64,000 nucleotides of DNA from Mytilus edulis (GCF_963676685.1 NC_092346.1:62806001-62870000), one strand, 5' to 3'. Counted from the first letter of the stretch, positions 11,160 to 49,113 are shown. Translations and numbers: made by a program. The notes: a model not told the origin generated them from the sequence alone.

Positions 11160-11259
11160 NNNNNNNNNNNNNNNNNNNNNNNNNNNNNNNNNNNNNNNNN
11201 NNNNNNNNNNNNNNNNNNNNNNNNNNNNNNNNNNNNNNNNNNNNNNNNNNNNNNNNNNN
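11160..11259. other. Assembly gap (100 N)
   Basis: Run of exactly 100 N, a typical placeholder for a gap of unknown size. Confidence 0.99.
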
Positions 11260-12130: not shown

Positions 12131-13648
12131 GTAAATTAATTTACCTAATCTTATTTAATTAGATATGTATTAAAATCTCTTTAAAAAGCTTAAACGTCAC
12201 CAAGCTACTCAGTACGTACAAAGCCTAAAAAACGAACTCGTCTATGGCTGATACGAATTTAACTTTAAGGCACTTGTAAAGGCTGTCTCTCTCATTCTTC
12301 CATATAAAAAGTCTGTGGGAAGAAGAGGGAGCTAACCTTTATCATCGAATGAAACACGTGCCTGTGCTAATATGTTTACCTGCCAACAGGACAATCCAAC
12401 AAACAGATATGCATATAGACTCCCGACCAGTGCTCGGTAGACCAGTGCTCAGTAACACGCTACAGAAATGATTTTTTTAATGAAAATAAAAACACTTTTG
12501 AATTAAAATATTTTTTGTTTTTATCCCTTAAAAGGGGCTTTACAGGAAATGTACATTTCACATGATCTTAACTTAACTGGAAATTAATAGCAGACGATTA
12601 ATCGGCAGTGGTGAATTGAAGTTGAAAATATCGCTCTTGGAATCCGGTTTAAAAAAACCTTAAGTAAATATTTAGTAGTTTGAAATAACATGAATCGATT
12701 ATAAATTCATTTACAATTCAAATGATGTGATTCCTACAGTAATATTCAATCCAGGGCGTTTGTATCATCATGTTTTGTCCCCCTAGAGCCCCTTCATATT
12801 TTCTCTTGACCACCGTCATTTTTAGGTAAACAATATATTTTGGGTAAACTGGCTTGTCCCTTCAAGTATTTTCCGGTTTGGGTGTTTCATATGTCACTGA
12901 TGAGCCGTGGTACTATGTTTGTGTGCAGTGTGAGGAATAATGAAATATGAACATGTTTTTAGGGAAAAAATAATTTTCCAAACAATACACATTTAGATCA
13001 AATTTAGAATCTCTGAATTTCTGTGAATACATGTATTTTACCATTTCTGTAAAATTTAAATGCCAATTATCAGTAAAATGTTCATTTTATCAAATAGACA
13101 TCATAGTTCTTATTTTATTTTTATTCTGAAGCTTTTATAACATTATCGAGAACTGGTCAAGTTGTATTCAAATTTTGAATATTTTCATCATGTGAATCAA
13201 GGATGCCCCAAGGTGACGTCAAAACAGGAATTAAAAACAACCAATCAGGTCCTTTTATTTCAAATAAGGTCAACTTTGATCAAACAAAAGGTCATGAATT
13301 AGTTTGCACGATTGTGTCGGTAAACAGTAAAAACCAGTGTTAAATTATCTAGCACTGGTCAGGAGAGTCTATATGAAATACTTGCCACTGAACTAAGCAA
13401 GTAAAAATCAGTTTACATAAACAAGACCATTCATTGTAACCTAATTAAAGTAATAAAGATGGCTTGAAAGGCTGTTTAAATTTTTGGTCGTTATGCTGTC
13501 CTATGAAGATGTCAGTCTCAGAGCCAAAAAAAAATTAAACAGCCTTTCAAAATTAGTCATAATTATTTAGATTGGACTAGTAAAATAATATACTTTATAG
13601 GTATTGTTAAATGTGATGACTTGGATGGCTATTTCAATCAGAATTAGA

Positions 13649-21900: not shown

Positions 21901-24900
21901 TAGTACCTGATATATGTGCAATATACTGTTAAAAACAGTCCATATTTATGTAGCTGAGGTATTATACTTTCCAATAAATAGCTAAAAATTTACATTTTAA
22001 CAGTTTTGAAATACTGCTTTATTTTGGGGCCAAGAAGGGCTTTTACTGGGCCTACTCCTTTGAGAAATTTTGAATTAACTTTGATTTGAAGTTCAATTTG
22101 CCGTACAATCTATGGTACATCTTCTTGTAGATTTGGAAAGTTTGGTGCAGTTTTTATACCAGGACTTTGTAAACCAGAAGATGCTGAATTATATGCTTGT
22201 CGACCAGGTCTACGAATCTGGAAATCCAAAATGGATGGTTCTGTCATTAGCACATATCTGTTCAAAGAACTTTTAAATAACCCTCATCCAACATTAGAAC
22301 TGTTACCTTTCAATAGAAAAACTAGAATGTTTCTGCCAGAAGCTCAGTTTGGGCCCTTGTATTTGTATAAAGATAAATACATTGTGACATGGTCAGATTC
22401 TAGTGTTTTTATTTTGAATATGGACAATACATCTGTGATAGGAGGAACGTTTCATGTTGGGACAATTCAAAACATTGCTGTTACAAATGATGAAATATTT
22501 ATCTTACGTAAAGATACAGATAGAAATGTGATAAGAATAGCTGAACGTCCTGAGACTTTGGCAGGTATGTGACTAAACCTGGAATCTTTTTCTGATGCCT
22601 ACATGTATATAACTTTACTAAGCTGTTTGAAGCTATTTGATTAGTTTGACACAAAATCATTGAATATAACATACCTCCAAGGAACATAATTAACATGAAC
22701 ATTGCACTATTAATGCTGTTAATTGTGCTGATTTTGCCAAGTAACATTTTTAACATTTGGCAAATTCTTTCACTCATGTAAAAATTGATTTTTGTATATG
22801 TAATGAATTTGCATTTTTGTCTATTGTTAAAGATAGGGATATGAGTAACCAAGGGGTTCATTTAAAGCTCGGAAACTGGGAGTGATCTCATGTGCTCCAA
22901 AAGAGTAAGCATATCCTGCCTCACTACTGGCACCCATTATGCTGCTTGTTGCAAGTAAAAATTTGGTCATAAGTCTCATTAGATGATTTTACAATTGAGG
23001 AAAAGGATAATTGCAATAATAAATGCACAGACAAATTTCTGTAATGACAGTTCATTTTTTGTTGAAAACTTTTCATTTCTGATTTTCCAATAATTTCTTT
23101 TGATATGTTTTTAGGTAATACATATCAGAGGTTAGTGAAGGATAAAAATCTGCCAGATTTTATGTCTGAAACTCCTGTAAAACATGAAAAAGCAGAAAAT
23201 ACTCAAACAACACCGTCACCACTTAGGTTTATAAAAGAAAATGTGATAGACAAAATAAAAAATTTAGATGTAATCTCAGATATGTCAGATGGTACCAGTT
23301 CTGTGTCAAATTTAGCTGACTCAGTGGATAAATATATTGAACAGAAAGAGTTACCTCCCATTGTGAAACTTGAAAATCCTGATCTTTTGACAATTGAAAT
23401 TTTTCCTGGAATTCCTACCACATCAGAGTCTACTGACCAAAATGTTACTTCACCTATAAGACGAGATAGATTTAATCCATTTTCAACAGATGATTCACAT
23501 GAATTTGAAGACGATACTGAGCTAGACACTTCTAATCTACCATTGTGCAATAAACCAAAGCCAGTTATTCTTAAATCTAGTCATGAAACCAAAGCAGAGC
23601 AACAGGATTCTAAAGAATCTTCTGGATCACATGACAGAATTAGGTCTATACCTATCAATACTCCCACAGATGACATTGCTATCAGTGTGAAAACAAAGAA
23701 AAAGAAAAAGAAGAAAATTGGTAATCCTTTTATTGAAGAATAACATAACAGATATAAACAAATTGTATTTATAAATATTTGCTATGACGGTATGTCATTC
23801 ACTCATAGGTTGCATGAAATTAGCTTAAAATAATAATGATAAATTACACAATACAAGTATTAATAAAATGAAAAAATTGAATCAATTTACATTACTCTTC
23901 CAGCATGTTAGGATGCATCTTGGCATAGGCTTCACTGATTCATAGTGAGTTTAACTTTATAATTCTTTTCTCAAATACTTACTTCATGATCACATTTGGG
24001 TCCTTTTCACATTTAAATTAAATAACACTTTGACTACAATTTTCAGTTTTATTGAAGATTTAACAAGTTAGTTTAGCTTGTGTATATAAATTTGATATTT
24101 TTTAATTACATATATGTATTTTTAATGGCTATTTTGTAGTATGATAAATTTTTCCTCTAGTTTTATGTTTTGATTTTTATATTCTAGATAGCAAGTTGTC
24201 TCCAAACATCAAGCATCAGGACCTTGACACACTATCCCAGAATTCTGTAGAAAGTGAAGCTACCAGTGAACATATGTCAGATAAAGAAAAGTCATCTGAC
24301 AGTGCGTCAAATGATAGAATATCCATGGAAACTGAAAATATAAATGTGGACATTTCTGACATCATTGGCTTAAAACCGGTAGAAAGTCAAATAAATTACA
24401 CAGAAGACAATCAATTAAAACATGGATCTGATGGGCACATAATGAATAAAGATGATGTGAAATGTGTACTGGTTCAGGAAGTACATAATATTCAGGATAA
24501 AGATGGTGTTGTTCCTGATTCTGAAAAAGTTTCAACTGTGAAAATTTCAGAAATGCAGATTAATGAAACTAAACTGAAGGAAAGCTTACAAAAGTCTGAA
24601 TCTGTGTTAAAAGAGGATAAAACTATTTCTATGAAACAAGAAGAAAAACCGAATAATGACAATGTAGTGGGTGTGGTAGAGAAAGACGTAGCAAAACCAA
24701 TTACAGATAATATTGCAAAAACAAAACAAGATAATAAAGTAAAACCAAAACAAGATAATATAGTAAAACCAATCGCAGATAATAATTCAAAACCAAAACA
24801 AGACAATAGTCCAAAACCACAGACATCAAAACCAATTGAAAATAAAGCAGAAAGTTCTATTACTGTAGATGATCTTTTCAAAGAAAATAAATCTAATCTA

Positions 24901-30900: not shown

Positions 30901-33900
30901 GAAAAAAATTTAAATGTGATTCAAAATTTATACTGCCTTGATGTTTTAGTCTAATTTATCTATAATCAAGGTTTCTGAACACAAAAATAACCAAATAGAG
31001 GTATACATGGAAATTATCTGAATTATTTTTAAATCTACTTATTACGGGTTAGAAATGAAAAAAATGAAAAGAAAACTGTATAATGATTTTCAGTTAAAGT
31101 TATAATTGGAAGCCACAAAGGTTAGGACATCCTTTTGTTTTTTTTAGGTTTAATTTGGGCTCAGCAACCAAATGGTGAAATATTTACATTCACTCCAACC
31201 AAAAAGAAAATAAGGACAGAGCAGAGGCCTCCAAAAGGCATGTTTGTGTGTATGAGTGTATGTGAGGAGGCTGTATGGGGCCTGAATGAGGATGGGAAGG
31301 TATACATACGTAGCGGCATAGCAGATCACTGTCCTGAGGGTGCCAAGTGGTGTGACCTGGATCTGAAACAATTGGGTATGAGTTTTCTATCTTTTATGAT
31401 CTTATATACCAACCAATGACAAAATAACAAATAATCTACAAAAAACATATTCATATATAGAAAGATTTCAATATTTATACACAATTGAAAAATGGCTTAC
31501 TAGGGTTTTCATGTTTATATAAGTAATGGATTTGAAATCTAGTGACAGAAATCTTCCCCTTGCAATTAGAAATGTTCAATCATTGGAATATTCTTTGTTG
31601 GAACACAGCAGGTAATAAGTGGCGAGATAGCATTCTGGAAAATAGTAATAATAAACAAACTGCTGCAAATACAAAGTTAACATATAATGTTATCATTTCC
31701 CCCTCAGTATAGCAAAGGATGATAATGACAGGTTTTAAAAGTTTTGTATAAAAAAGTCAACATGGTCTGTATGGTTACTATAGTATAGTATACTGATTTG
31801 TTTTGTTATACAGGTGATGCCCATTTAATCCATCTATCTTGTGGCTCTAGGAATGTCTGGGCTATTGACAGTGATGGTGTAGTATACCAAAGGATAGGAG
31901 TAAAGGCCCCTTCCACTCACTCTCTACAGGCTGCTTGGTTACCACCCGTATGAGAATTTTAGAGGGATTCCGCTTAAAATTAGCAGGAACCCAGGCGGAA
32001 TCCGCTTAAAAATCTAGACTTTTAGACGGAATTAAGGCGGACATGGAAAAAAGAAAAAAATCCGTCTAAACTGTTATATACCTTAGGCGAAATGTTAACT
32101 TTTTTCCTGCTGAGTTAACAGGATTTCTGTAGCAACAGATATAACACAGACGGAATGCTGGACTTAGTAAGATTTGTTTCATTTCTAAGGTGGAAATTGT
32201 ACTTAAAAAATTTTTGTTCAATTTTATGAGGCGGAATTTGTACTTAGAAAATTTTGTTTATATTTCTGAGGCGGAATTTGTACTTAGAAAATTTTGTTTG
32301 AATTTCTGAGGCGGAATTTCGGACTTAGAATATTTTTCACTTTTTTCTTATGAAAAATATATTGATTTATTTGTATTTTTGCAAATATATGATTAGAGGG
32401 TGGTGATTATCTGAGCAATATATCCAACATTAGTCAAGTTATCCAACAGATCAGAGATGCACAATCCCAGTATGTGGTTTGTATCAGTGCAACTTAGAAT
32501 CATTTGCAGGCTTTAACATCACATTACCATCATCATGACCCATATATCATACTTAGGCTTTAAAACAGAAATCTGTTGAATAAAATTTATTTGGAGACAA
32601 ATCGATGTATCCTTATACAAATATGAACTACAGAATAAAACAACATTCATGACATGTAACAACTACTAGTTTTATTCTCTTGATTTTCAGAAATCTACAT
32701 TCACAGTACATGCAGTACCACAGTTTGGATTAATTTTTCATCAACATGATTAATACAAATAATATTTTTTCCCTTTACATCAACATGATCAACATGATCA
32801 ATATTTTCTAATTTTAGTTTTGTAGCTATCATAATTTGCATTAAGCACTGTGAAGAAAATATTAGTTTTATGCTTTCTCTTTACACATGCAGGGCATATC
32901 CAGCCATTTTTAAAAAGGAGGTTCCCAACCCAGAGTAAAGGGGCAGGAACTATATGCTCCCATTCAAATGCATTGATTGGCAAAAAAAGAACTTTTACTT
33001 TACTGTTTTTAGAAAAAGGTTACATATGTACATGTATATAAACATTAATGAAATACTTAGAAATATGAAATATTAATCTGATTCCATTTTGTTTGGGAAT
33101 TTGCAAATATATGAATACTGTGCACAATCATATGTAACTAGCATACAAGAAGTAGTTATGTTTTCAATTGGTATTACTTCCAAAAATGCAGTTTTTGAAA
33201 CTCTTAGAATATTGGACTTTGGTGCATAATTTCCACATCTTAGTTTTTCAATAAAAGCCAAATAGTACTGTTGATCATTCTCTACAAGATTAATGAAAAA
33301 CTTGACTTGTCCAAAATTAATTAATCCCCTACATTTGTATTCAATTACTGAGTTGTTCCTCTTTACCATACGAGTATATGACTTTCCATATACAATACAG
33401 TCCTTCAGTTCCAAACGTTTAAAGCATTGAAACTTCATTTGTATAAGCTCATATCCAAAAAAATTATGCAATGCCACATTTTCTGAAGCAGATAGAGTTA
33501 TTTCTTTTATGCCACCTAAAATATAGCCAATGTTTCCAATTTTTTTCATTCGCTTTAAAATGTATGGACATTCCATTGAGTTATAAATTGATTCACAAAC
33601 TGATCCTTTTTCTATGCAGTTCTGTTTTAACTCTGGCAACTTTTGAAGAAAAGATACTCCAGTTACTATTTGGCTATCAATATTCTGAGTACCACGAATC
33701 ATTCTAATTAAGGCACCATTTTTGTCTTCAAAAGAGAAACAACTGTGAGTATATAAAGGACCTAAATTGCGAACACAATCAGCTAAATGTAACAATTGGT
33801 GAATATTTAAGCGCATGTAACATCCATTGTAAAGTCTTGGAAAATTCTTACAAAATTCCAACAAATACATTTCTGCTTCATTTACTTCTTCATCTGTTGA

Positions 33901-36900
33901 TCCATATTTAAGAAGAACATGCATTGCATTTACCAACAATAAATAATGTGACCATCGTTCCTGATCAAGTATTCCATGTAGAACTGGAGCACCATAATAT
34001 AACAGAAAAGATCGGTACTCTGAAGCCTTCCAGTATTTAAGGTCATTCTGTATTGTTCTAGGAAGTCGTGTAATTTCAGTAGTTGGACGTATACTAATAA
34101 GTCTTTCATCAACCTGACACAATTTTTGGAAGAAGTTGAAAGGTTTAGAAGAATGTTTTTGAGCAAACCATAATTCTAATAAAAGTTTCTGTACTCCCAA
34201 AAGTACCCCATGCATATAGTCAATGGCAATACCATTGACAATGTCAAATTCTGGGAAAAAAGACAACCATGATGGACCTTTAATTCCTTTTACTACAGAA
34301 CTTGTTCCATGTGTACCATTCAATGCTTGACGAGCATTTTCAATAACATTGTGAACTGTTCTTTCTGGGCCTTTTGGATTTGCCTCATCAAATGGAAATA
34401 CTCGCGTCTGACCTTTTCCAACTGCTGCAGAAGTGCCTTGTTGTTCACATTTCCAACAGGAGTATGCACCATTATATTGTATATGGTTGCATAATATACT
34501 TCTTGCTGGAAGATCTGCTGTACCACATAACAATATTCCTTTTGATAGAAATGCTCCTCTTTTTGGAGAGAAGCATTCTATGCCATTATACAAATTTTTC
34601 ATTGAATGTTGAAATGGTTTGAGAAAAGTGCCCATTGCTGGTTTCTGACTTCCAAACCATAAGCTTGCCAGTATCATATTCTCTCTTTTCATTCGTAGTT
34701 TATACGGCAGTTCATTTATTACCAAGAAAATAGGCCACACTGAAACTTTACTGCTCTTAAATACTGCTGCTCCATCAGTGTTAAAAGTAAAAGAAATGTT
34801 ATCAGGATTGCTCAAAAGACCATTCTCTTTGTTTAAAGATTTATAAATTTTCCCGTCATAAATATCTTCGTAGGTTCCATCTGGTGTATTACGCATAAAG
34901 CGATGTTGCAATCTTTCATAGAAATTTTCCTGAGAAAACAAATTTTGTATTTGGTTCTGTAATGGTATTTCAAGAAAGTAATTTCCATCATTTTTACTAA
35001 ATGGCTTTTTACAAAATTCATATGGACAATTCTTTAGAGAAGTATTTTCAATGGCTCCTAAACAATGGCCACAGTAGAAGTGTTTTACTAATGGAATACG
35101 CAAATTTGTAAAAAACTTTTTAAACTCATGGAGCTTCGTACACAGATTATGTTCAAATGGTAAAGCAAATGCAATAATGTTCAATAACACTTGTGTTCCT
35201 TCGCTAGACACACCAAAATTTGTTGTAAATAGGGCAAGAAGTAGCATGAAAGCTCCTACTGTTACTGAAGCTCCAGGATAAAGTGGTCGTAAGTCATAGT
35301 CTGAATTCAAATCATCATTCTGATCAAAATTAGTAAATGTATGTTCATCATCATTGGAATCTTCCCAGAGCTCGAAAGGATCTTCTAACTCTATTGTTTC
35401 TTCATAAAGGGATTTAAGAATATCGTCCAGTTCTGGATCATCACTTTTTAAATCTATTTCTGTAGCTTGTTCAAAGGTAATTGCATCAACTTGGTCACAA
35501 TGATCAATAGTACTCTGCAGCTGAAATAAGCAAATACATAAAAATGTACATTTGTTGAGTAATGCACATGTATAAACATATCTTTAAGGTTTACATGCAA
35601 GTTATTTACATTTATGTATGTGCCTGTCCCATTAGTCAGGAGTCTGTAATTCAGTGGTTGTCTTTTGTTTATGTGTTACATGTTTGTTTTTCATTCATTT
35701 TTTTACATAAATAAGGCCGTTAGTTTTCTCGTTTAAATTGTTTTACATTGTTTTATCAGGGCCTTTTATAGCCGACTATGCGGTATGGGCTTTGCTCATT
35801 GTTGAAGTCCGTACGGTTACCTATAGTTGTTAATGTTTGAGTCATTTTGGTCTTTTTTGGATAGTTGTCTCATTGGCAATCATACCAATCTTCTTTTTAT
35901 GTTACATTGTACATTTGTATTAAGCAGTAATACATGTATCTAAAATTTATACACTGTGCAGGTTTAAAAAAGAATTGACACAGCAGGTTTTTTCTTAAAC
36001 AGACCATAATTTTTTACATGTACAAATGTACAGATTATTATGAGATAGTTGTTTTGATTATGAGCTGCAATTTAGTAAAATGCTAAATCACGTTGATGTA
36101 TTGGCCTCAGATGACAACATGATGTAGCGATTACATGATCAATTGAAGGTCATCTATGTGTGATACTCATTCACGTGTTAATCTTTAAATAATCGTGTTT
36201 AAAGTTGCAAAACTTACTTTTTTGTGTTTTTGTTTATTTGCGGAAGTTGAATATTTTTAAAACAATAACGGAGATGTTCCGGAATGCGGAAATATGTTCC
36301 GGATAAAAAAAAATACCAACACTATAATATATAACATGCGACGTATAACCTACCATTGAGGCTTCTGGAGCAGGACTTTCTTTGGATAACAAATTGTTTT
36401 GAATTTCATCCTCAAACACGAAGCTTTGGTTAACTTCCGACTCAAAAATGTAGTTTTCGTGTAACTGTTCAGTTGATTCATTCGATGTTAAATCCAAAGT
36501 AGGGACAGAACCATTAAGAGTCAACACTGGAATCGGAAGTCCATCCTTTTTTATTATTTCTTTTTGTCTGTATGGTCCCCTTTTTCTTTTCTTTTTCATA
36601 TTGTATTCATCGGCCATGTTGAGGAGAAGAGTACTGTGTACAATTGGGGTTGCCAAAGGATGAATTAATTGCTTGTATTTGGAACCATTTTATTTGCTGC
36701 TATGTAGTCCTTTGAATAACTGTATATTTTTGTATACCAACTTTTCCAAGATCGACATATTTAAAGCCAATATTTTGTTCAGAATGGTGTTTTTTTTTTA
36801 ATTATAAAAAATATATTTTGTCATCAGTAAATCAAATTCATTAGACAAATCCGCTCCACAGATTATATTTTATGAAGAAAAATCAAAACTTATAAAAAAA

Positions 36901-39900
36901 TACATGTTCTCAAAGTCAGGGTTTTTTATTTTTAGCCTTCTTAGGTCTTTAATTTAATATTCATATTAAAGTAAGTATATAACGTTTTTTTTTAAATAAA
37001 AATCTGTGATACACTGCATGAGTTGAACCTGTGACGATCCTCATTCCGTTATATCAGTAGCATACGCCAGAGCTTACTGTAATTTGAAACCTCAATGACC
37101 AGTGCCATGCTGAATAGCGTTTCCTGTAATTTGAAACCTGAAAGACCAGTGCCATTTTGAATTTTCATCGCCACACATCATCACAGAACACGTTTTTCGA
37201 AGTAAAAAAATATGTATGCCTGTATTCATTGCGATTTTGACAATACATTGACTGTTCTTGGAAAGCAAAGCAAAAAGTTGAAGTTATTGGGAGAATTCAA
37301 AGTTAAAGAAAAGGTTGAACTGAAATGGTCAAAATCGGAAATCTACACAGGAATAATTGTAAAAATCAACGGTAAGTTACTTGCAATTTTTAACATTGAA
37401 GGAATTTTAATATCTATTCAGCAGTTTTGTTTTAAGAGTTAATATTATTTTTTAAATTGTTTATGTTTTTAAAGGTACGATTTATTGTTTTTTTTTACGA
37501 CTTAAATGTAATTTAAACAGTCACTTAATATTGACTACTATAAAACATGTGGTTATAGTAGTCTCAGTTAATATCAAGGATTTGGTGATAGTAAAACAAT
37601 TATTCGTCTCGGGTAAAAAGGAAACAACCTTTGAGACGTGTTGTACAATTATTTTAAAGTATTTAAAAAGACGTAAGTTCTAAACTTTCTGAAAAAATCG
37701 TTGAACTACCACCCCCCTTTTAATCGGAAAATGTATCCTGATCGCGATCGATGTAGCCTCCCATAAGTTTACTAGACTTTATAATTTGTAATCAGTTCTG
37801 ATATTTAACTTTCCTCGAAATCTGGACCATCCCTGCCAAATAAAAATATTTTATTAAACCTATGCATGTCATCGTGAGTATTTACCCCATGCTTTATGTT
37901 CACGTAAATATTTGTCGATAGATGTCGCTGCTTCGACGTAAACAATATCGTAAATACATGGTTCCCTGTACGAGTCATCGACTATAACGCCTTATATTTA
38001 ACAGATATGCTATTATTCTATAACAGTTTAAAATTTTCATTCATAAAAATCCCAACCGACAAGACGAAAACAAATTGAGATGGCATGCATTTAATCGAGC
38101 TAAGGGTTACAGGGAATTAAAACCTGATGCTTCTTAAAAAATCCAATTAAACGGTAATCAATTATAGTCATGATTTTTCGGATATTTTCTTTTTACATGA
38201 ATATTATGACTTAAAGGAACCGATCACAAGATTTATGTCAAACTACTTTTCTCGGATTTTTTTACAGGGATGAGATGATTTTTTCAACTTTCTGATTTTT
38301 TTAACTTAAGATTTGACTAAATATTCAAGATGTTGATGTTTGTACTGCCACTAGTCCAATTGATAATCTGGTCTTCAGTGACTATTATTGTACATGTATA
38401 TTAAAGTTATTTTGCTTTGACGCCTTACTGATCATGAGCAGACTTAGGCTTATAGAAAAATAATTAAATAGCCTTGCAGCACGTCAATAATATTTAGACT
38501 AATGCTTGCACATGCTTGTCTTTCTTTAGTGGCGGATCCTGATGTTTTCATAAAAGAGGAGGGGATCACTGACGGTATCGGGATCGTTCGCCCTGATTAC
38601 ATATTTGCCCTAGGTTCGTTCACACTGAGTTTGTTCGTCCTGATAGTCCGTTCGCCCTGGGTTCGTTCGCCCTATATTAATTTATGATATGTATATGTTA
38701 CATCAATGAACGAAATATATATATATGTATATATTAAAATTTATGTATATCTATTAAAAGTTAAATACAGAATATTTGCCAAATTTATATTAATAAAATA
38801 AAATTCTTGGCTGCATTGCTACACTTTATTTTATAATTACTTTTAATAACTGTTGATTGAATTTTGATTGCTGATTAGGTGTCATTTTGAAACCTGAGTT
38901 ATCACTGATTGTTAGATAAATTGTCTTTGATGGATTAATATTGAGAATACAGTAACAAATACTTTGTAGTCATTGAATTCACAAAAACTTATCCTTGTAT
39001 AGTCTTTAGTTGTTTTACATTTTCTTCTTGCTCAACAGTTGGACTCATCATGGCCAAAAATGATGAGTCCCTGGACTTGCCACCAAAAATCCTTAGCGAG
39101 AACCATGTTAATGTCGTCAGAACAGTAAAGTGAATTTGCAATTTGAGTTAGAATTTACATTCGGACTTAAAATATTTCGAATGCGATTTACACTATTTGG
39201 GTAATGCAAATTGAATTCAAATTATGTGTGAACGTTGCATGAAACATGTATTCTCACACTTTGATCTTTTAATTAAAATTCTTCACGCATGTACACATCT
39301 ATGCTGCTCAGTAATGAAATCAATTGTTATTTTTTGTAGAATCTCAAGACTTTTTGGATGAATTCGCTATAAAAGCCGTAACAAAGTTTTTGAAGCGTTC
39401 AAAGAGTAAAGACTTGCCAGAGGAAATATACACATACAATCATACGGAACCAGAATTGAATTCAAAACGATGCAGGACAAGCACCAAAAAAATAAATGAA
39501 AGTAAGGAACAAGAGAGTCAATTTAGCCCCAAAAAGCAGAAAAAACATAAAGATGATGATGAACCTAACCAAGAGCCACCCATTGCAGTTACCAAAAAAT
39601 CAAAAAAAAATCTGAAGCAAAATGAAAATGTCAAAGTCACAGATAAAGTATTAAATCCTACAAAGATTAAAGCTAATAAGAAAAAGGCAGAGGAGAATGT
39701 TTCTAAATCTCAGGGCAACCAGATGTTTGGCTTATCAAATTTGGAACTCCAGTTTGGTGATGAGAGTTCCATACATGACGAGACAGTCCTGTCAACATCT
39801 GAAGAAAGAAATAACTTGGAGATATTGCCCTCTAAACCAGCAAGTTCTGCAGACCCTAACTTGACAGCTCCATCTCCAGACAGGAGCAACATATTGCCAT

Positions 39901-42900
39901 CCTCTCCTTCGATACTTGCAGAAAGGAGCCATGCACCCTCCACATCTACACCATCTGCAGACAGGAGCAATACATTGCCATTAACCGCTTCGCTAGACGA
40001 TTATACAAACCAAAGTGCAGGACCTATGCCATCTGCATATGCAGGAAGCACCTTGAAAGGGCCATTGCAGTCAACATCAGCAGAAACATCTTTGACAAGT
40101 ACATGGAAGTTGTGTAAATCACTGTATAATGTGGATAATTCAGAGCAAACATGCTCTAATACAACATTAACAGAAATGAATTTTCCAGGTAATTTATTTA
40201 CATGTATTATCACACTTAAAGTAAAGGCTTAAAAAGAGTACATGTAGTGTACACTGTGAAGAAGTTGATCTTTGAAAAAAATGAAAAAAAAGTTGTACCT
40301 GTACGGTGACCTATAGTTGTTGATTTTTTGTTTCATTTTGGTCTTTGGTGGATAGTTGTCTCATTGGCAATCATACCACATCATCTTTCTTATATATATG
40401 TAGTTAAAAAAACAAGGCCAGTTAACCTATCTACCCTACTTTATATTCTATCCTGAAAGATATTTTTTTGTCATTTTTCATTAAGCATTGTAAAAGTCAG
40501 AATGCGATCAAAGCCTTGGTCAGCTTGAATTGGAGTTGGAATTTATTTACCTCAATTACTTAGGGTGACAATGTACTGGTATATACTTACTACAGTGAAC
40601 TACATGTAGAATGTTAAAAACCTCAAGCACATTTGTTATGTATGAAGCAGAAATAAACTCAAATGGAATTATCTTTTTCTGACCAGTTTTGATATACATG
40701 TACATTGTACTTCAAATTCATCTGTAAATGAACATTTGTTAAGATTAACATATTTCATTGCAATACTTGATGTACACATTTTTTGTATATGGCTATTGAT
40801 AAAAAATACAATTTCATACGATAACTACGTCCCCTTAACTTAACTTAGTTTGACTTTAGTATATATGTCATACATGTATCTGTTAACTTTGAAATAACTG
40901 TATAATTTCAGTGCCATCCCCAGTTGTTCTGGAATTTCTTGAGTTGATAACAAACAAAGAAGTGCAAAACTTTTGCTTAAAACTTAGTCAGCATTACAAG
41001 TTTAAGAAACAAGAGGAAGTAATTACAGAAAGCAGTACAGATAAGGAGGTATGTTTTTGTATACATGTTTCTCTAAGAAATTGAATTACATTTTTTATGA
41101 ATTAACAAGTCATATTCAACAATTGAAATACTGAAAAGTTGATATATTATTGTATAATTGGGAATAACATCACAGATTTTAATTTGATATATATGTCCAG
41201 AAATCTATTTATAGTCATGACAGTAAAATATTGTAGGTTTGAAATCAAAATTTTCCTTTTTATAAGCACAATATAAAAAAGAAAACAATTTTTATGAAAT
41301 CTATGTTACAAAACTAAAAATAATTCCAGAGATCTTAATTGTGAAAAACATCCTGTATTCACTTCTAAATACTTTTAGTATAAATAATAATAAATCCTTA
41401 AATGTCTAAAAACTAATTTCTGGTGACAAAACTTGAAAAAAGTTTCGTAGGAAGATATAAACTGTTTCACGAAAAAGACTTTTATTAATAACATGAATAT
41501 ACATTGTACTTGTTTTTGGCTCTTATTTTCAGTACACTTAAAATTCAGAATTCATTAGAAAAAGGACAGATACATGTATCATCCAAGTATGTCAGTCTAT
41601 AATAATGTTATTTCTCATTGCTTTCCCTATTTTTAAACTATTAACTTATTATTATTATTATTTTTTAGTTTCCTTTAGATGTCATGGAATCTTTGGACTG
41701 TGCTCCTACATACAGTGAGCTCATGCCTCAGAAAAATCAAAGCCTTGGATTGAGGAGATCACCTAGAAAACATGTGTCTAGCTCTGCTTCCTTCACTGGT
41801 AATAGCACTTGTCAACCCTACTACCAAACCAGTGAAGAATGTACTAGTACATGTACTCAAAAACCAACTGAGAAATTTTCTGCAACTAAAGACTTAAATC
41901 AGTACCAAGAAGCACCCATCCAACAGATTCAGATGTCACCTTTTCCCTGTCCGTCTCCTCTGAATTCTCAACATCAATCTCCTAACATTCAGAGTTCAAC
42001 ATTTTCCAGCCAACATTTTCCGTCTCCTCTGAATTCTCAACATCAACCTCCTAACATTCAGAGTTCAACATTTTCCAGCCAACATTTTCCGTCTCCTCTG
42101 AATTCTCATCATCAACCTCCTAACATTCAGAGTTTAACATTTTCCAGTCAACAGAGTCCGTCTCCTCTGAATTCTCAACATCAACCTCCTAACATTCAGA
42201 GTTCAACATTTTCCAGTCACCAGAGTCCGTCTTATCTGAATTCTCAACATCAACCTCCTAACATTCAGGGTTCAACATTTTCCAGTCACCAGAGTCCGTC
42301 TCCTCTGAATTCTCAACATCAACCTCCTAACATTCAGAGTTCAACATTTTCCAGTCACCAGAGTCCGTCTCCTCTGAATTCTCAACATCAACCTCCTAAC
42401 ATTCAGAGTTCAACATTTTCCAGTCACCAGAGTCCGTCTCCTCTGAATTCTCCATCGCAACATGTTATGCAGTCACATGATAGTGATCAATCTGATGACA
42501 ATAAGGTAAAAATTATTATATTTTCAAGAGTAAAAAAATGCCTGAGTTTTCAAGTTAATTATGCTTCTAACAATTATGAAGAATTTTATGTCTTAGATTG
42601 TTAGTGTTATTTTTAGATATAAGAAGGATGCAAAATTAATAAACACTGGGTTTCTCATGGATTGTATAATGTGTTTAGGGACTATAACATCATAATTGGT
42701 TCACGAGTAAAATGTTTCTTTTTAGTGTTAAAGGGTAAACAATCCTCATTTCATGTATTCCGCCAGATAATATACTGTAAATTCAGAAATTATTGCGTGC
42801 ATTTATTATTGCGATTTTGTCATTTTACACTTGAATGCGATTTTAATTTTTACGATTTTGAGAAAAGTCATGCTTAAGTCAGTTCAAATATTACAAAATG

Positions 42901-45900
42901 CGAGTTTTAATTATTGCGTTTACAACTCAGTCGCATTATTCGCAATAATAAAAACCTCGCAATAATTTCTGAATTTACAGTACATGATTTTAAGGAAGAT
43001 ATCTTTTTGACATAAATTTAAGAGCATCTCTAACACTCAAACACGTACATGTTCACAAGCTAATATACATACATCATAAAAATGCAAACAAAGCAACTTA
43101 ATGAATGTACTTATATTTTTCAACAGTTGGATATAAGAATATTTTGTCTGACAGAACCTTGACATTAGACACCAGCCGTTTATCTTAAAAGGAAAAAGGG
43201 GGGAGGAAGTTTAAAAGTAATTCAGCATAGACTCTAATTTTTATTAATTTTATAACCGGATGATAAATACATCTTTTTTATTTTTCCAGATGGTTAAGTT
43301 ACTGCAGACATCAGATGTACAAGTGAGGCGGGGTAGTTTAAGAAAGGCCAATACCAATGCAAGTAAAGGTGCAACTCAAAAATCATCTTTTAAGCTGGCT
43401 AGTTCATTGCTGCCCCTGTTATTCTCTGTTGATGAACTTGCAAATTCATGTGGACAAGGTTTAAAGAAGAAAGCCAATGATGTCAGAACTCCTTTGGATC
43501 CTGTTAGAATTGGAGTCTTAAAAGGTAAGGTTTTGTATTTCTTTATATTTTGATTATTTAATATATATATGCACACCTAAAAAGCCCATAGTATAAATGT
43601 AATGGGTAGGATCTTAATCTGGTACAGGTTTATAATCAATGTGAACTATTTTCAGATCAATAGCTAAGCCAAAAGCCAAGATTTTCTTTAATTTAACAAT
43701 TCCATATATAAAGCATTGACTGAGTGAAATTCTTGAACTTAAATGTAACATATGTTAATAGTTTAAAAAGTGAAATTGACTTGTTGTTACTGTATTTTTA
43801 GTAAAACATGGAGTCAAAATCAGCTCTAAAGATAGGGAATTCAAGTCAATAATATGTCAAAATAATAAAGAAAAATACCAAATATTTATTGATAATATTT
43901 ACATTTGACCAAATTAAATCAACCAATAAAGGGATGCTCAGGAAAAAATATCTGACCTACTTATGCAGCTCACAATTTACCTGTATAACATAGACGAATT
44001 TGGTAAATTTATTTTAATTTAATCCATTATGCATGGTAATTTTAATTTATGTCTTCTTTTTTTTCAGATTATGTTACTGCTTGGTGTGCAAAACACAACA
44101 GATGCATGCAAGATTGCCAGATCAATGATGCCGTTACAGAGCAAGTCAGCTATGCCCGAAAAAAAATAAAAAAATTGTGAACTTTCTTTATATCTGAAGA
44201 ACACTGGAAAAACATAAAAATGTGACTTATAAATGAATAGGAAGAAATTGTGAAGGACTAAGATTGTCAATATTTTACATATGTACATTGTAGTAAATTA
44301 TAGTTCAAATACAGTTGGCCAGGTTTGATAACATTTTTGGTATTTAATTTGTATGAGCCCTAGATATTCTTTGCAAGAATGCATAGAAATGGTAAAAACC
44401 TCAATCTGTAGAAAGAAAAATTTCTTTCTTTGAAGGCAGATTTTTTCCCCCTTTTCTTAAGGCTGATTTTTTTTCATATTCTAAGGCGGAATTTATTTCT
44501 AATTCTTTAGGCGGAATTTTTGCCACTTTGAAAGGCGGATATATTTTCCGTCTATTTAGGCGGACATATTTTCCCTCTCTTTAGGCGGATATATTTTTGT
44601 GAAATATTTTTCCTTTTAATAAGGCGGAATTTTTTCCCCCCTAAGACAGGCGGATAAATTAGCATATTTCGGCTCTATTCCGCCTGGAACCCGCCTGGAA
44701 TCCATGTAAGAAAGATTCTTCGTGTAAAGGGTGACTTTAAAGGGATTCCCTCTAAAAAACCCGTCTAAAACCCGTCTAAAATACGCCTGGATTTTTTCGT
44801 ACAGGCAGTAGACTCAGGGCCATCAGGAACCACATTTATACAAGTCTTCACTGGACCTTCAGACCTTAATGTATGTAATCTGGTATTTTATAATTGTAAT
44901 ATCTGATAGAAAAGCCTATGTTTTAGTCATAATAACCCCAAAAATTAATTTCAATAAGCACAAGTACCAACTCTAGTCTTGAACTGTTCTCAAATGTGCT
45001 TCTCAAATAAGTGTTTGACATTTAAAGTATAAGTAATATTTTATCTAAAGTATTAATAGTTCATAGTTCAAAAAATATTGGTGTCAAGGAGCTCCTTTTA
45101 GGATATTTGATATTTAAAAAATGGGGGGAAAAGGCTGACAAGTCTTTTATCTTATATTTGCATTGATATTACATGTATTTGGGTCTGAAATTGAAAGAAA
45201 AGAAATCTAGATTTTGCTTAAATTTTGATAAGTGACCCCTTAATGAAGTCTTATATGAAAAGAAAAATGGGTTTTAGGGGGCAAAATATTTTACTGTGTA
45301 TTAATATTCACTGTGTATCATCGTACAGCGGATATAGGTACTAACCAAGCGGGCATGATAGATTTTGAACTGACACGGTAATGAAAATCTTTGTTTTATT
45401 TTATCAACATTCAGTGTACATTTCTCAACATCTGAAATTCCTGCTCCAAAATAATTTTCGCATCGATTTTTTACTTTTATATTCTAATAAGAACAATTAA
45501 CTTGTAAATGCGCAAATAGTTGCGAATGTCAACACCAACTTTCAATTTTGATACAATTGTCAAGACATTTACATGTTTTACCTTAAAGAAAGCTAATACA
45601 GGTCAAAAGTAATAGTAACCAATCATAAACCTACCTGTGATTACTCATTCCTTGAAACTTTTTGGGTAATAAACGAACATGAAATTTTTTTTTGTGTACG
45701 GTGTACCGCAACTTAACTATGCACCATAGGGCTTCCAAAACGGTCATATATTCCGGTCATTTGTATAATGTCCGGTAAAAGTCCGGCTGGGCAAAGCATG
45801 AAACGGTCATATACTTTTTATTTTTCAAGGCTTTTTCGGTCATTTTTACATAATTCACGATCTTTTTGACCCAACCTTTTGGCTTTAACATCAACACGTT

Positions 45901-48900
45901 TCCGGTCATAAATGTGACATGATGATTAATCACTATCAAAACAACACCTACTTCAATACTTTCTAATTTTAATCAAGGCTAATTAGTAGTTAGACAGCTG
46001 AAATCTACCTGTTCAGGTGACAGGTGAACTATGATCAGTACCGGACATCGTATAAATTGATCGGTTTAATCACAAATATTTTCTTACATTTCAGTGGTTT
46101 GTATCTAATTGATTTCGTTCTAAAGATTAAAATTATTAGAAATTAGTTTATCAAAATGATTTGATGAAAAATTTTAAGGTTTTAAATAAAAAATCGTCAA
46201 AACTATGTCGTATGAACTAGAACACGTGTGCGCATGTGCACAGGTGGGAAATTTAATAATGCATCCTACATTTCTTCAAAAATGCTAAAATTATCAATGA
46301 TACCTGTATCTAACGTTCAATTCAAGTATTTTGTTGAAGAAATAACGTGGAAAGAGCTTCTTCTCTCAGTCGTGCTTTGTAAAAATACACGGATTTTACG
46401 TATCCGTTTATGGTCCATGTTTTACCATTGTCAAGTCAACATCCGGTTGAAAACGAAAGTAGTTTTTGACAATGTCATTTTGCACAAATAAAAAGTCTAT
46501 GGCAGATATGAGCACGCTGATGTGCACACTTTGAATGATGCACTGCCAATTTAACAGTAACATCCTAACATCAAATTCATATCATATCAAAGTAAAGTTT
46601 AAAATCGTTTTTTTTTTTAATGTAATGTCAATCATTGGAATGGCCATCTGATTACCATAATTGCCTTTTGTGACTAAGTCTTAAGGGATTAAAATCGGGA
46701 TCAGATATGAAATGTCCGGCTGGCTCAAATATTTTTTGGAAGCCCTGCTGACCATACAGAAGGATTTGTGTGGTCAGCTAAACACCGTACACAACGCTTC
46801 TTTTCGAAAAAAAATATCGAAAAAAACATATGCATGAAAGATTTCAATGTCAATTATTGATATAACTATACTTATTACACACGCATAGTGGCCTATTATC
46901 AGAAAAAGAGTTGCAATGAATATAGAATTATATCGGGTGAGACGAGAGCCAACTTCTTTGACAAGTATTTGCACATGTTTTTAGTAATCATTCTTGTTTT
47001 GGGAAAATAATGAGACATCTCTAATCATTAACCTATGACCAAATCATTTCTTAAAACAACAATTATGTTTAGATTGAGGTACACATTGATATTATGTGCA
47101 CAAAACAAAGATTTTCGTTACCGTGTGAGGTCAAAATTGATCACTCCCGCTTGGTTAGTACCTATATCCGCTTTACTGATGATACAAGTTGATATTGAAC
47201 AGTTGTAACAATTTGAATAAATTATTAAAAAAAAATTAAAAAATTATAATATAACTAGTGTCTGATTCTGTTGTCATTACTAAATCTCATAAATAATAAA
47301 ACTTGTTGTGCTGTAATGTGTGTTTAATTGATAGGTATGGGCTATAGATAACAGAAGGCAGACTTATGTCAGGATTGGTATAACAGATGACATGCCTATC
47401 GGAACAGAATGGATTCACATCCCTGGTAAGTTCATAGCACAATAGTCAATACACAATTTTTTTGCATTCATCATTACTGCAATTAAAAACAATTTAGAAT
47501 ATGTTTTTGTCCTGGTTATTACCAAATTCCTTCATGCTTGATTCTAGATCAAGCTTAATGAAATTGCTGTCAATCGCTGTAAAATATATGGCCCTATATC
47601 TGGAAAACAAAAATTTCACAGCATGTAAATGTTAGATTTATTGCTTAGATGTGTATATTATAATGGAGTACTTATACTTGATATTGTTGTCATATTAGCT
47701 TCCATTTCTTTCATATTTTCTAGCCAAAAATGAGATAGCTCTGCTTTACTGCCATGATTAAGAGATTTCGGATTTAAACATTGTTGAAATGTCAAGTTAC
47801 CTGATTTGGTGTGTTTATTGTTAGGAGTATTGCTAGAGTGTTTTTATATTTGGTTTGTTGTTGCATTAGCATTCTTGAGTTTTAATATCCAGAAGAAAAT
47901 GATAAAAATGTACCTTTGATATATGTGGTGAAATAAAGGATTTAGCGAGATTTTTTTCTCAAACAAAAATAATTTCAAATCAACTTGTATACTGCATTCA
48001 GTGAATTTGATGTCCTGTAAGAACTATACATAGACTATTTCAATCTGTTCTTGATCTCTTTTTAATTTTAGATTTTCAAAACTTTGATTTATTAATGAAT
48101 GTTAATATCTGATGTAATTAATTTTCAGGCATTCAAGCACAAGAGCTTGCCATAAGCAATACATTTCTGTGGGCCTTGGACCCAAATGGAGAAGTACTTT
48201 GTCGTCATAATATAACTAAAGATAATCCAGGGGGAGACTACTGGAGAAAGATTCCTGGAATATTTCTCCACATCTCATGTAAGTATCTCATATATCAAGC
48301 TAACAAATATTTCTAATAATGAATATTTGCCCAGATCTTATGTAGTTCTATCATATATCAAAATAACATTTATTTCTAAATTGTCAAAATCTCATAATAT
48401 TACTTCCTATATCTATAGAACATTACTTTCTAAAAAGAAAAATTTGTCAAGATCTTATAGTATTAGTTTCTATATCTATAGAACACATTCATTACCTTCT
48501 TATCAGGAATATTTTTTCATGCCAAATGGGACTGTCAGATATCAATACAAAAATTGATAGAAACGAATCAAGACAAATTACATGTGTATGTACCGGTAAG
48601 CAACTACCAGTCACTGTAAGTCCTTAAACAATGTGTCAAACTCACACTGTATAGACACCTACAAAAGGTCTTGACATGTCAACATGTAAATTGTTTTCAA
48701 AAGTTATAGTAAAGGAAGTCATCGTATACATCAGATTTTAAATTTCCATATGCCCTTATACTTCAATAACATTAACAAAAGTATCCAAATATTTGCACCA
48801 CCTTCAATTGTCAGTCCCCACACACATTTAATCGAGCTTTTTTGAGACATTATAAAAGCATTCTTTAGTTAGTAATACAAATAGGCCTAATTGTGAACTA

Positions 48901-49113
48901 TTGAAAAATTGCACAGAGGCTCAGTTTTTCATTTAAAATAATATACACTGTATTTCAGGTTCTGTAAATGACCAGTTGTGGGCAATAGGCCGTGAAGGAC
49001 AGATTTTCTGTAGAAAAACAAGATATCTATTACGTAAAGATTCGCCACAGGATGCTCAAAAAGGCAGAAAATCATCAAATTTATCCATCAGTGAAGACTG
49101 GGAATTAGTGTAA
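15954..49113 (+). CDS. TECPR2: Tectonin beta-propeller repeat-containing protein 2 (~1575 aa if the transposon is spliced out)
   Basis: GT-AG exons with consistent phases: 15954-16199, 16980-17108, 19038-19169, 20915-21078, 22131-22564, 23115-23720, 24188-25733, 26028-26246, 28829-28964, 29706-29907, 30418-30507, 31148-31375, 31814-31947, 44805-44870, 47335-47425, 48129-48278, 48959-49113. N-terminal WD40 region (GKFGAVFIPGLCK..LYACRPGLRIW), disordered middle, TECPR repeats (VWAID..YVRIGITDDMPIGTEWIHIPG) and terminal LIR EDWELV. Confidence 0.93.
17895..18052. mobile_element. Short MITE (hAT-like termini)
   Basis: Inverted termini cccgtagccagg / cctggctacggg; flanking direct repeat caact, extendable to caactcata. 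Confidence 0.7.
18108..18447. repeat. Minisatellite, 55-bp unit with shorter 43-bp variants, ~7 copies
   Basis: The unit tattttactccgagccaggttaaacaggcttacattcactaataagattagaaca starts at 18201, 18256 and 18311; shortened units follow at 18358 and 18401. Confidence 0.9.
19188..19510 (+). mobile_element. Internally deleted HINE related to the 27132-28436 element
   Basis: Shares ccatcactt, aaaaatcttctcctctgaaactactg and the 3' tgagcga..caggctct hairpin. Confidence 0.65.
21534..22061. mobile_element. Degenerate MITE, Kolobok-like ends
   Basis: Imperfect inverted termini aaaggggtagatctgttaagggctgattttggcc / ggccaagaagggcttttactgggcctactccttt. Confidence 0.55.
27132..28436 (+). mobile_element. 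HINE with (gtc)n microsatellite and two ~507-bp core repeats
   Basis: Start tttttagctcacctggcccgaagggccaagtgagc; cgtcgtcgtccgtc tract; core repeat starting at 27244 and 27751; end aggtgagcgacacaggctctttagagcctctagt. Confidence 0.85.
31960..32340. repeat. Left subterminal repeat array of the CACTA element
   Basis: AGGCGGAATTT core in ~40-bp tandem units (32228, 32268, 32308, with degenerate copies at ~32148 and ~32187) plus dispersed copies in both orientations. Confidence 0.9.
33073..36617 (-). CDS. CACTA/EnSpm-type DDE transposase, 2 exons (36617-36354, 35520-33073), ~903 aa
   Basis: Donor ATG|GTAGGT and acceptor TTATTTCAG|CTG join in frame with no stops. Motifs: basic NLS KKKRKR, CGHC..CPYEFC zinc finger, FNTDG..SVWP..INELP, TADLPAR, IDYMH, WKASE, NIHQLLH..GPL..SCFSFE. 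Confidence 0.93.
35612..35905 (+). mobile_element. SINE-like host repeat in the transposase intron
   Basis: gtgcctgtccca..tcaggag..gtaattcagtggttgtc...gttgtctcattggcaatcatacca. Related pieces lie at 40295-40390, 60840-61160, 62320-62460 and, inverted, at ~21396-21445. Confidence 0.75.
36618..37211. promoter_or_regulatory. Putative bidirectional promoter of the transposon
   Basis: 594 bp between the divergent ATGs. Contains a 32-bp direct repeat (37077-37108, 37124-37155) whose second copy runs into a YY1-like GCCATTTT. Confidence 0.55.
37212..44180 (+). CDS. Transposon accessory gene encoding a C-terminal BEN-domain protein, 6 exons, ~776 aa
   Basis: Phase-consistent GT-AG exons 37212-37371, 39340-40188, 40912-41048, 41669-42505, 43290-43524 and 44068-44180. 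The C-terminus LASSLLPLLFSVDELANSCGQG..PLDPVRIGVLKDYV..INDAVTEQVSYARKK fits the BEN pattern (LFs.EELa.S..G..LDp..i..ik). Confidence 0.85.
41951..42451 (+). repeat. Coding minisatellite, 69 bp x ~7.3
   Basis: Encodes 23-aa units of PSPLNSQHQPPNIQSSTFSSHQS within the BEN gene exon. Confidence 0.95.
42775..42980. mobile_element. Tc1/mariner-type MITE nested in a BEN-gene intron
   Basis: Perfect 23-bp TIR ctgtaaattcagaaattattgcg with a TA duplication on both sides. Confidence 0.9.
44430..44790. repeat. Right subterminal repeat array of the CACTA element
   Basis: AGGCGGA at ~44485, 44509, 44533, 44559, 44583, 44622 and 44648 (~24-25-bp spacing), followed by inverted ccgcct/ccgtct copies. Confidence 0.9.
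45314..47186. mobile_element. 1.87-kb non-autonomous DNA transposon with ~85-bp TIRs
   Basis: tgtatcatcgtacagcggatataggtactaaccaagcggg...cacggtaatgaaaatctttgtttt is inverted at 47101-47186; no long ORF inside. Confidence 0.8.

Follow-up and report, generated by a model that had tools for sequence, protein, structure and literature searches.

What becomes of a conserved exon when a full-length transposon inserts into it: is the allele broken, or can the transposon's own ends let it be spliced out as an intron? This question is raised by a 64,000-nucleotide (nt) stretch of Mytilus edulis DNA (GCF_963676685.1 NC_092346.1:62806001-62870000), hereafter the window, in which positions are counted from the first nucleotide. 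A 12,861-bp CMC/Tnp2-type transposon in plus orientation (31945-44805) interrupts an exon of a TECPR2-like gene, and its two ends read like a splice donor and a splice acceptor. The original prediction for this locus, made from the sequence, held that the transposon could be removed from the transcript as a frame-preserving intron and would be a new type of intron-generating system. We instead favor, at a probability of about 0.68, the view that the insertion is very young and polymorphic and disrupts one of the TECPR2 alleles. The locus would then record the very recent arrival, in the germline, of a cut-and-paste transposon, autonomous and apparently active, in exon 13 of single-copy TECPR2.

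A transposon splits a conserved TECPR2 exon

The interrupted gene is TECPR2 by both domain content and gene order. It spans 15954-49113 on the plus strand in 17 coding exons, which we mapped codon by codon from RefSeq protein XP_071163849.1 with the help of Pfam and named TECPR2 relatives. Walking along the codons, XP_071163849.1 (1573 amino acids, aa) matches the window exactly over 17 exons, stop codon included, and is thus the gene model of the window's own chromosome. The N-terminal part of the protein is an HPS5-like beta-propeller (Pfam PF23756, E 3.4e-20), the C-terminal part carries Hyd_WA/Tectonin repeats (PF06462/PF19193) in at least four exons, and the end reads ..SEDWELV-stop, containing a W-x-x-V motif (WELV) that resembles an LC3-interacting region (LIR). 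All the features by which we recognize TECPR2 are present: the propeller, the TECPR/Hyd_WA repeats and the C-terminal LIR-like motif. The gene is also collinear with proteins named TECPR2 by NCBI and UniProt. A profile-free search with one host exon found full-length relatives, which a second search identified as TECPR2 of bivalves and gastropods.

The transposon lies in exon 13. The left part of this exon (31814-31944) ends in GCT TGG TTA CCA (A-W-L-P), and the right part (44808-44870) runs from V-D-S-G-P-S-G to S-D-L-N, followed by donor GTATGT at 44871. Residues 1378-1421 of XP_071163849.1 correspond to 31813-31944 and residues 1422-1443 to 44808-44873, each with a 100% match. The insertion is in phase 0, between a CCA (Pro) and a GTA (Val) codon, and divides the protein sequence as W-L-P^V-D. 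Further downstream, exons follow at 47335-47425, 48129-48278 and 48959-49113.

Comparison with other animals and with other copies of the family defined the insertion to the nucleotide. In about 25 TECPR2 orthologues from a wide range of animals, W-[LIV]-P^[VIL]-[DE] runs on without a break, and every Mytilus protein compared has AAWLPVDSGPSG at this site. The uninterrupted exon is thus ancestral, as had been proposed, and the insertion site falls in a conserved motif. To set the boundaries, we compared 20 left-end and 20 right-end loci from the same genome, the window's own included; similarity to other family copies begins at 31945 and stops at 44805. On either side lies the dinucleotide CA (31943-31944 and 44806-44807). 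Flanking dinucleotides are identical in 8 of 12 other left/right pairs, against a chance expectation of 1 in 16, and a 2-bp target-site duplication is therefore the rule in this family. The predicted split of W-L-P^V-D with a CA duplication is thus borne out by junction sequence and orthologues alike. The predicted span of 31943-44807 needs trimming: it takes in both CA copies, and the element itself spans 31945-44805.

The insertion is very young and polymorphic

A second, identical copy dates the insertion to the recent past. It lies 235 kb downstream at C3:63072632-63085492, matches the window's copy at 12,861 of 12,861 bases and sits between unrelated flanks, which makes the insertion very young. 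PMC12130899 quotes a rate of 4.4e-9 per site per year for insects and molluscs. With zero differences between two 12,861-bp copies, our own arithmetic from this rate gives a 95% upper bound of ~26,000 years, and the true age may be far less. The full transposase open reading frame (ORF) occurs in these two genome copies only, 100% identical to each other. The only other close relative of this ORF in the genome is a partial one at G000:C11:9185612-9187110, 96% identical over query positions 369-1880. Two full copies and one partial copy of the transposase make the autonomous lineage very low in copy number. The family also includes at least a few dozen ~3-kb copies, whose ends are 87-91% identical. 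The picture suggested by these copies is of a low-copy element that has been active very recently. The TECPR2 insertion and its identical copy 235 kb away are probably connected by a local hop, of the kind that is frequent for cut-and-paste elements.

The RefSeq gene model passes over the transposon in a way that no canonical intron could produce. XP_071163849.1 reads WLPVD at the junction, not the WLPPAVD that splicing at the transposon's ends would give, and it is reproduced by 15 GT-AG introns plus one gap at 31945-44807. Considering all cuts at the junction, those that yield this protein are 31942/44806 (CA..GG), 31943/44807 (AC..GC) and 31944/44808 (CC..CA); none is canonical, and no canonical intron across the element gives XP_071163849.1. 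The gap takes out exactly the element plus one duplicated CA, and what remains has the empty-allele sequence. The model does not use the canonical GT..AG pair that lies 3 nt away. CAG2193665.1, a protein from another, older M. edulis assembly, also reads WLPVD. Neither a +Pro-Ala isoform nor a second M. edulis isoform is present among the 7 named members of the 90% protein cluster, and a 51-aa ORF query returned no candidates among short protein fragments carrying either junction.

We read these results as evidence that the transcripts or proteins behind the annotation came from an empty allele. Since the RefSeq model has the empty-allele sequence, the insertion is polymorphic at the level of protein models and probably heterozygous in the sequenced animal. 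Polymorphism would also fit the uninterrupted exon in the other Mytilus models, including that of the other M. edulis assembly. The interrupted exon and a second TECPR2 exon (22132-22563) each occur once in the assembly, as expected of a single-copy gene; searches with these two exons found neither an empty-allele contig nor a TECPR2 paralogue. The assembled haplotype would thus carry a disrupted TECPR2 allele, null or strongly hypomorphic, whose unspliced RNA stops after P-P-V. We propose that the allele is tolerated because it is heterozygous or rare.

Two observations on the gene model and the exon stand beside these results. XP_071163849.1 is presented as a wild-type protein, with no low-quality flag in its name, despite having bridged a 12.86-kb element through a non-canonical 'intron'. 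In addition, the codon at 44868-44870, 63 nt from the insertion site, is AAT (Asn, ..SDLN) and is a possible phasing marker. The corresponding residue is Tyr in the other M. edulis assembly, M. trossulus, M. coruscus, M. californianus and one further Mytilus RefSeq protein, and Asn in M. galloprovincialis VDI64823/4.

The transposon ends carry splice-like sites in frame

Both ends of the transposon contain the dinucleotides of an intron. The left end reads CCC^GTATGAG, with GT at 31948-49 (element positions 4-5), and host intron 12, at 31376, starts TGG^GTATGAGT with the same donor hexamer. The right end reads TTTTTTCGTACAG^G, with AG at 44803-04 (element positions -3/-2) and one G left in the exon. 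This AG is preceded by TTTTTTCGTAC and has a T6 tract, a CTAAA branch-like motif ~25 nt upstream and no other AG nearer than 62 nt upstream. Joining 31947 to 44805 produces ..AAWLPPAVDSGPSG.. in frame, translated ..AAWLPPAVDSG.. with Pro-Ala added, and the joined frame stays open through the remaining exons to ..SEDWELV-stop. The predicted footprint is 4 nt of element plus 2 nt of duplication, or 6 nt, which would preserve the frame. Left unspliced, the frame reads CCA CCC GTA TGA, or P-P-V-stop, closing the ORF at 31798-31953.

The sequence-level claims of the original prediction hold up well here. It had pointed out a left end of CCC^GTATGA with GT at 31948 and the hexamer of the host intron at 31376, a right-end AG at 44803-04 behind ~60 nt free of AG, a WLPPAVDSG join (31947 to 44805) in frame through the downstream exons to the LIR motif, and an immediate stop without splicing (CCC GTA TGA). 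Each agrees with the sequence and its translation. Its 6-nt in-frame footprint (3+1+2 nt) is arithmetically sound as a prediction.

The splice-like dinucleotides are built into the terminal inverted repeats (TIRs). The left TIR, CCCGTATGAGAA, occupies 31945-31956 and holds the candidate donor CCC^GTATGA. The element's right end reads TTTTCGTACAGG; its final stretch, TTTTTTCGTACAGG at 44792-44805, holds the candidate acceptor, and its last 12 nt (44794-44805) form the right TIR. The two arms, CCCGTATGAGAA and CCTGTACGAAAA, match at 9 of 12 positions, and these short, imperfect repeats are conserved across the ends examined. GT is present in both arms, and the right-end AG exists because of a single arm mismatch at position 3 (CCC vs CCT). 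An element inserted in reverse orientation would accordingly offer GT and no AG. The terminal GT and AG are conserved in every family copy examined, including copies only ~80% identical overall. They are fixed features of the family's termini, putative cryptic splice sites through which in-frame removal is conceivable.

Internal sites compete with the terminal ones

The terminal donor is weak and the terminal acceptor ordinary. We scored sites with a rough position weight matrix (PWM) built from the 15 canonical introns of the host gene, with host donors scored leave-one-out; the scores are indicative only. The terminal donor reached 3.2 bits, compared with 2.1-11.0 for host donors. Its CCC^GT context is weak, with C at positions -1 and -2, which occurs in none of the host donors. 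The terminal acceptor scored 8.0 bits, in the middle of the range for host acceptors.

Many sites inside the element score at least as well as those at its ends. On the plus strand, 134 internal GT and 15 internal AG sites equal or exceed the terminal scores. Among the best internal sites, acceptors at 38267, 41532, 41668, 43289 and 44067 (those at 38267, 41532, 41668 and 43289 score 11-13 bits) and donors at 37372, 40189, 41049 and 43525 flank sense-strand ORFs. Another strong internal donor, CAT^GTAAGA at 44706 (8.1 bits), lies 98 nt from the right end. The plus strand of the element also contains 16 AATAAA motifs. At 12.86 kb, the would-be intron is ~5 times as long as the longest other intron of the host gene, whose 15 GT-AG introns measure 294-2582 nt. 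Precise one-step removal is therefore best described as possible, but under strong competition from internal sites, including those between the sense-strand ORFs. As an intron, the full element would be far inferior to a short non-autonomous copy.

Disruption is favored over splicing

Whether the allele is disrupted or rescued turns on how its transcript would be processed. Precise splicing from GT 31948 to AG 44804 would add Pro-Ala in frame, keep the allele functional and make the element an intron-generating transposon. We judge this outcome unlikely, although the case for it is a specific one: the sites exist in all family ends examined, the AG arises from the one TIR mismatch at position 3, the arithmetic is correct and the product is in frame. 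The donor hexamer is that of host intron 12, and the mid-range acceptor follows a 62-nt stretch free of AG. There are precedents too, in maize by the title of Menssen 1990 and in the introners of Aureococcus, whose footprint is 4+8 nt. Against it stand the RefSeq model, which arrives at WLPVD through a non-canonical gap though a canonical GT-AG pair was available, and the lack of a +Pro-Ala isoform among the cluster members that have names. The weak CCC^GT donor (3.2 bits) would face 134 internal GT sites scoring at least equally, and the sense-strand ORFs come with high-scoring acceptors (38267, 41532, 43289, 44067) and donors (37372, 40189, 41049, 43525). These sites and the 16 AATAAA motifs make exon inclusion or early polyadenylation likely, in an intron five times the length of any other in the gene. 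No other family copy examined lies in a host exon, and the part that the ends play in transposition already accounts for their conservation. Because W-L-P^V-D is conserved, an insertion of two residues there may not be neutral even if splicing were exact. A more ambitious version holds that the asymmetric ends and the 2-bp duplication are an evolved 'soft landing' device, by which any sense-oriented exonic insertion, even of a full 12.9-kb copy, would be removed with a 6-nt in-frame scar. Were it true, the mussel would be the first bilaterian in which an autonomous DNA transposon has been caught generating an intron; we regard this version as improbable.

Imprecise splicing, in which the donor or acceptor at an end is joined to sites inside the element, above all those of the sense-strand ORF set, to give chimeric or frame-shifted, degraded or truncated transcripts, would be a variant of the knockout in which aberrant isoforms could be detected, and we hold it to be about as unlikely as exact removal. 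Its appeal lies in the many internal sites equal to or stronger than the terminal ones, among them the 8.1-bit donor at 44706, 98 nt from the right end, and the 11-13-bit acceptors at 38267, 41532, 41668 and 43289. By their titles, reports on Tc1 in C. elegans and 412 in Drosophila vermilion describe elements spliced from mutant pre-mRNA. Set against this are the roughness of a PWM drawn from 15 introns and the absence of any such isoform from the RefSeq cluster examined. An assembly artefact, with the element misplaced into TECPR2 on account of its identical copy 235 kb away, is highly improbable. Two 12.86-kb copies identical at every base on one chromosome, and a RefSeq model that behaves as if the element were absent, do invite the suspicion. 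The two copies have unrelated flanks, however, and the junctions consist of exact family termini with a perfect 2-bp CA duplication in an otherwise intact exon, which a mis-join would not reproduce. Some considerations do weigh against simple disruption. The PWM behind the competition argument is based on 15 introns only, and the terminal sites are plausible in themselves: the donor hexamer belongs to a real host intron, and the mid-range acceptor has its T6 tract, CTAAA motif and 62-nt AG-free stretch. If the RNA used for annotation came from non-carriers, the RefSeq model is uninformative about splicing in carriers. We nonetheless favor the disruption of one allele by a polymorphic insertion of very recent date, with efficient splicing probably absent and TECPR2 function probably lost.

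Other copies of the family show no introner-like behavior

If the ends served to turn insertions into introns, other copies might be found in coding genes. We rebuilt the empty sites of 12 other two-ended copies and of the identical second copy and checked for open frames across each site; the sample consists of the copies scored by the search, together with 40 single flanks that include the window's two. There was no sign of a host-exon location among the 12 paired copies, the identical second copy or the 40 single flanks. The identical second copy is outside any coding frame. Open frames abutting the single flanks are no longer than those at random positions, and the three longest are unlike real proteins. 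A ~3.2-kb copy (L005/L026, G000:C10:50377069-50380291) with a TA duplication does lie in sense within a 590-codon ORF; we rejected it as an exonic insertion, the ORF being a long interspersed nuclear element (LINE) reverse transcriptase and not a host exon. Of the hallmarks of introners, many copies residing as spliced introns in coding genes were not seen among the copies sampled, and a GT..AG supplied by the element that keeps the frame on removal is present as a sequence potential. The family thus gives no sign of introner-like behavior in this sample.

The flanking dinucleotides show a pattern of their own. Four pairs (L002/L022, L006/L040, L013/L036 and L018/L034) differ only in the first base, T versus C. 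Such T/C-mismatched flanks make up 4 of 13 pairs when the window's own is counted, reading TA/CA three times and CA/TA once. One of them belongs to the copy identical at 12,861 bases, which makes a subsequent point mutation very improbable. A YA target preference with mismatch repair is one possibility, and polymorphism at the site another.

The element is a CMC-type transposon with two divergent ORF sets

The element's coding content and ends place it in the CMC superfamily. A 745-aa transposase ORF lies at 33073-35310 on the minus strand, antisense to TECPR2, and matches Pfam PF02992 Transposase_21 (Tnp2) with E 4.5e-16 and 59 bits (cutoff 28.6). Also on the minus strand, a 140-aa ORF at 36234-36656 has a basic KKKRKRGP stretch and no Pfam match; it may be an upstream transposase exon. 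A second ORF set, a putative accessory gene, runs in sense with TECPR2 on the plus strand at 37212-44177 (37212-37442, 39324-40232, 41684-42604, 43260-43553 and 44046-44177), with high-scoring splice-like sites between its ORFs. An exon-by-exon search of these sense-strand ORFs found no significant BEN or other Pfam domain, and a search for relatives of the 302-aa accessory ORF gave no match in its length range. The 306-aa ORF at 41684-42604 (+) consists mostly of tandem ~23-residue repeats (..SPSPLNSQHQPPNIQSSTFSSHQ..), without a Pfam match.

The subterminal regions are rich in AGGCGGA, of which composition predicts ~0.4 copies per strand. Five copies occupy 31993-32316 on the plus strand, in the first 372 bp of the element, and seven occupy 44484-44655, in its last 322 bp and in the same orientation. 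All 12 subterminal copies at both ends are therefore on the plus strand, and one inverted copy only is found, at 44679. As direct rather than inverted repeats, these regions make the two ends functionally asymmetric.

The Transposase_21 ORF, the TIRs, the subterminal repeats and the short duplication together identify the element, from its sequence features, as a CMC/En-Spm-type DNA transposon. We rejected a strict plant-type CACTA element, since the termini are CCCGTA.../...TACAGG and the duplication is 2 bp and not 3 bp. The earlier designation as a CACTA transposon is thus partly right: the element is a full-length member of the Tnp2 family of CMC type, with CCCGTA/CCTGTA termini in place of CACTA and a 2-bp duplication in place of the plant 3-bp one.

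Elsewhere in the window, the intron that follows the insertion contains a ~130-bp repeat at 45070-45200, which has at least 260 candidate genome matches at 80-86% identity and is probably a short interspersed nuclear element (SINE) or a miniature inverted-repeat transposable element (MITE). A run of 100 N at 11160-11259 marks an assembly gap or a masked stretch.

Significance and comparison with known systems

As a natural case, the locus gives a clean view of an autonomous CMC transposon that is active in a bivalve today or was until very recently, and whose probable 235-kb hop placed a new copy in a conserved gene of autophagy/trafficking. A second lesson is that public gene models can pass over a polymorphic insertion without notice, by means of a non-canonical 'intron', and so hide the disruption of an exon. 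For the broader issue of whether transposon termini rescue exonic insertions in animals, it offers a sharply defined case. If the transcript is spliced, animal CMC elements would be linked to intron gain of the introner type; if not, this is an ordinary disruptive allele.

Maize En/Spm is one of the known systems closest to the mussel element. En/Spm makes two products from one transcript, and the a2-m1 dSpm element is reportedly short and defective, with CACTA termini and a duplication of 3 bp. In C. elegans, removal of Tc1 is said to use cryptic sites and to be mostly imprecise. Going by its title, Menssen et al. 1990 (EMBO J 9:3051; ref. 38 of PMC4219821) describes terminal splice sites in maize En/Spm. 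The mussel element resembles En/Spm in its Tnp2/TnpD-like Transposase_21 family, its insertion in an exon and the placement of both donor and acceptor inside its ends, by which almost all of it could be taken out as a new intron. Unlike the plant case, where splicing was reportedly demonstrated by experiment, the bivalve case concerns a 12.9-kb full-length copy with CCCGTA/CCTGTA ends and a 2-bp duplication, whose splicing is a prediction from sequence.

Animal precedents come from other superfamilies. The titles of Rushforth and Anderson 1996 (Tc1, C. elegans) and Fridell et al. 1990 (412, Drosophila vermilion exon), as listed in PMC2586383, speak of an element spliced from mutant pre-mRNA. 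Like the mussel element, Tc1 and 412 are exonic insertions in animals; their removal at the RNA level through sites in or near their ends reportedly softens the mutation. They differ from the CMC element in superfamily.

Introners provide a parallel in reading-frame arithmetic. In Aureococcus, according to Fig. 2F of Gozashti et al. 2022 (PMC9860276), they carry both splice sites and leave 4 nt of element plus 8 nt of duplication, making 12 nt and 4 residues. The footprint is divisible by three in both systems, 4+8 nt there and 4+2 nt here. According to PMC12130899 and PMC9860276, introner families have medians of 30-654 nt, number from 5 to >2,000 copies as introns and are mostly non-autonomous, and PMC9860276 reports them in two animal groups only. 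PMC12130899 describes most introners as non-autonomous, with autonomous and non-autonomous copies, TIR DNA transposons among them, jointly generating introns in several species. Unlike these short elements with many copies as introns, the mussel family comprises 2 full copies besides at least a few dozen ~3-kb copies, none of those examined being in a host exon.

Within the CMC superfamily, the element is typical in its Tnp2 transposase, short TIRs that start C-rich, subterminal repeat arrays, second ORF set and short duplication, which is 2-4 bp in the superfamily. It departs from plant CACTA elements proper in its 2-bp duplication, its non-CACTA termini and its divergent ORF sets. The claim of a new type of intron-generating system was overstated, given the precedents in Gozashti et al. 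2022, in PMC12130899 and, by its title, in Menssen et al. 1990. If splicing were confirmed, the mussel locus would add a bivalve host and a full-length CMC element as a variant of a known phenomenon.

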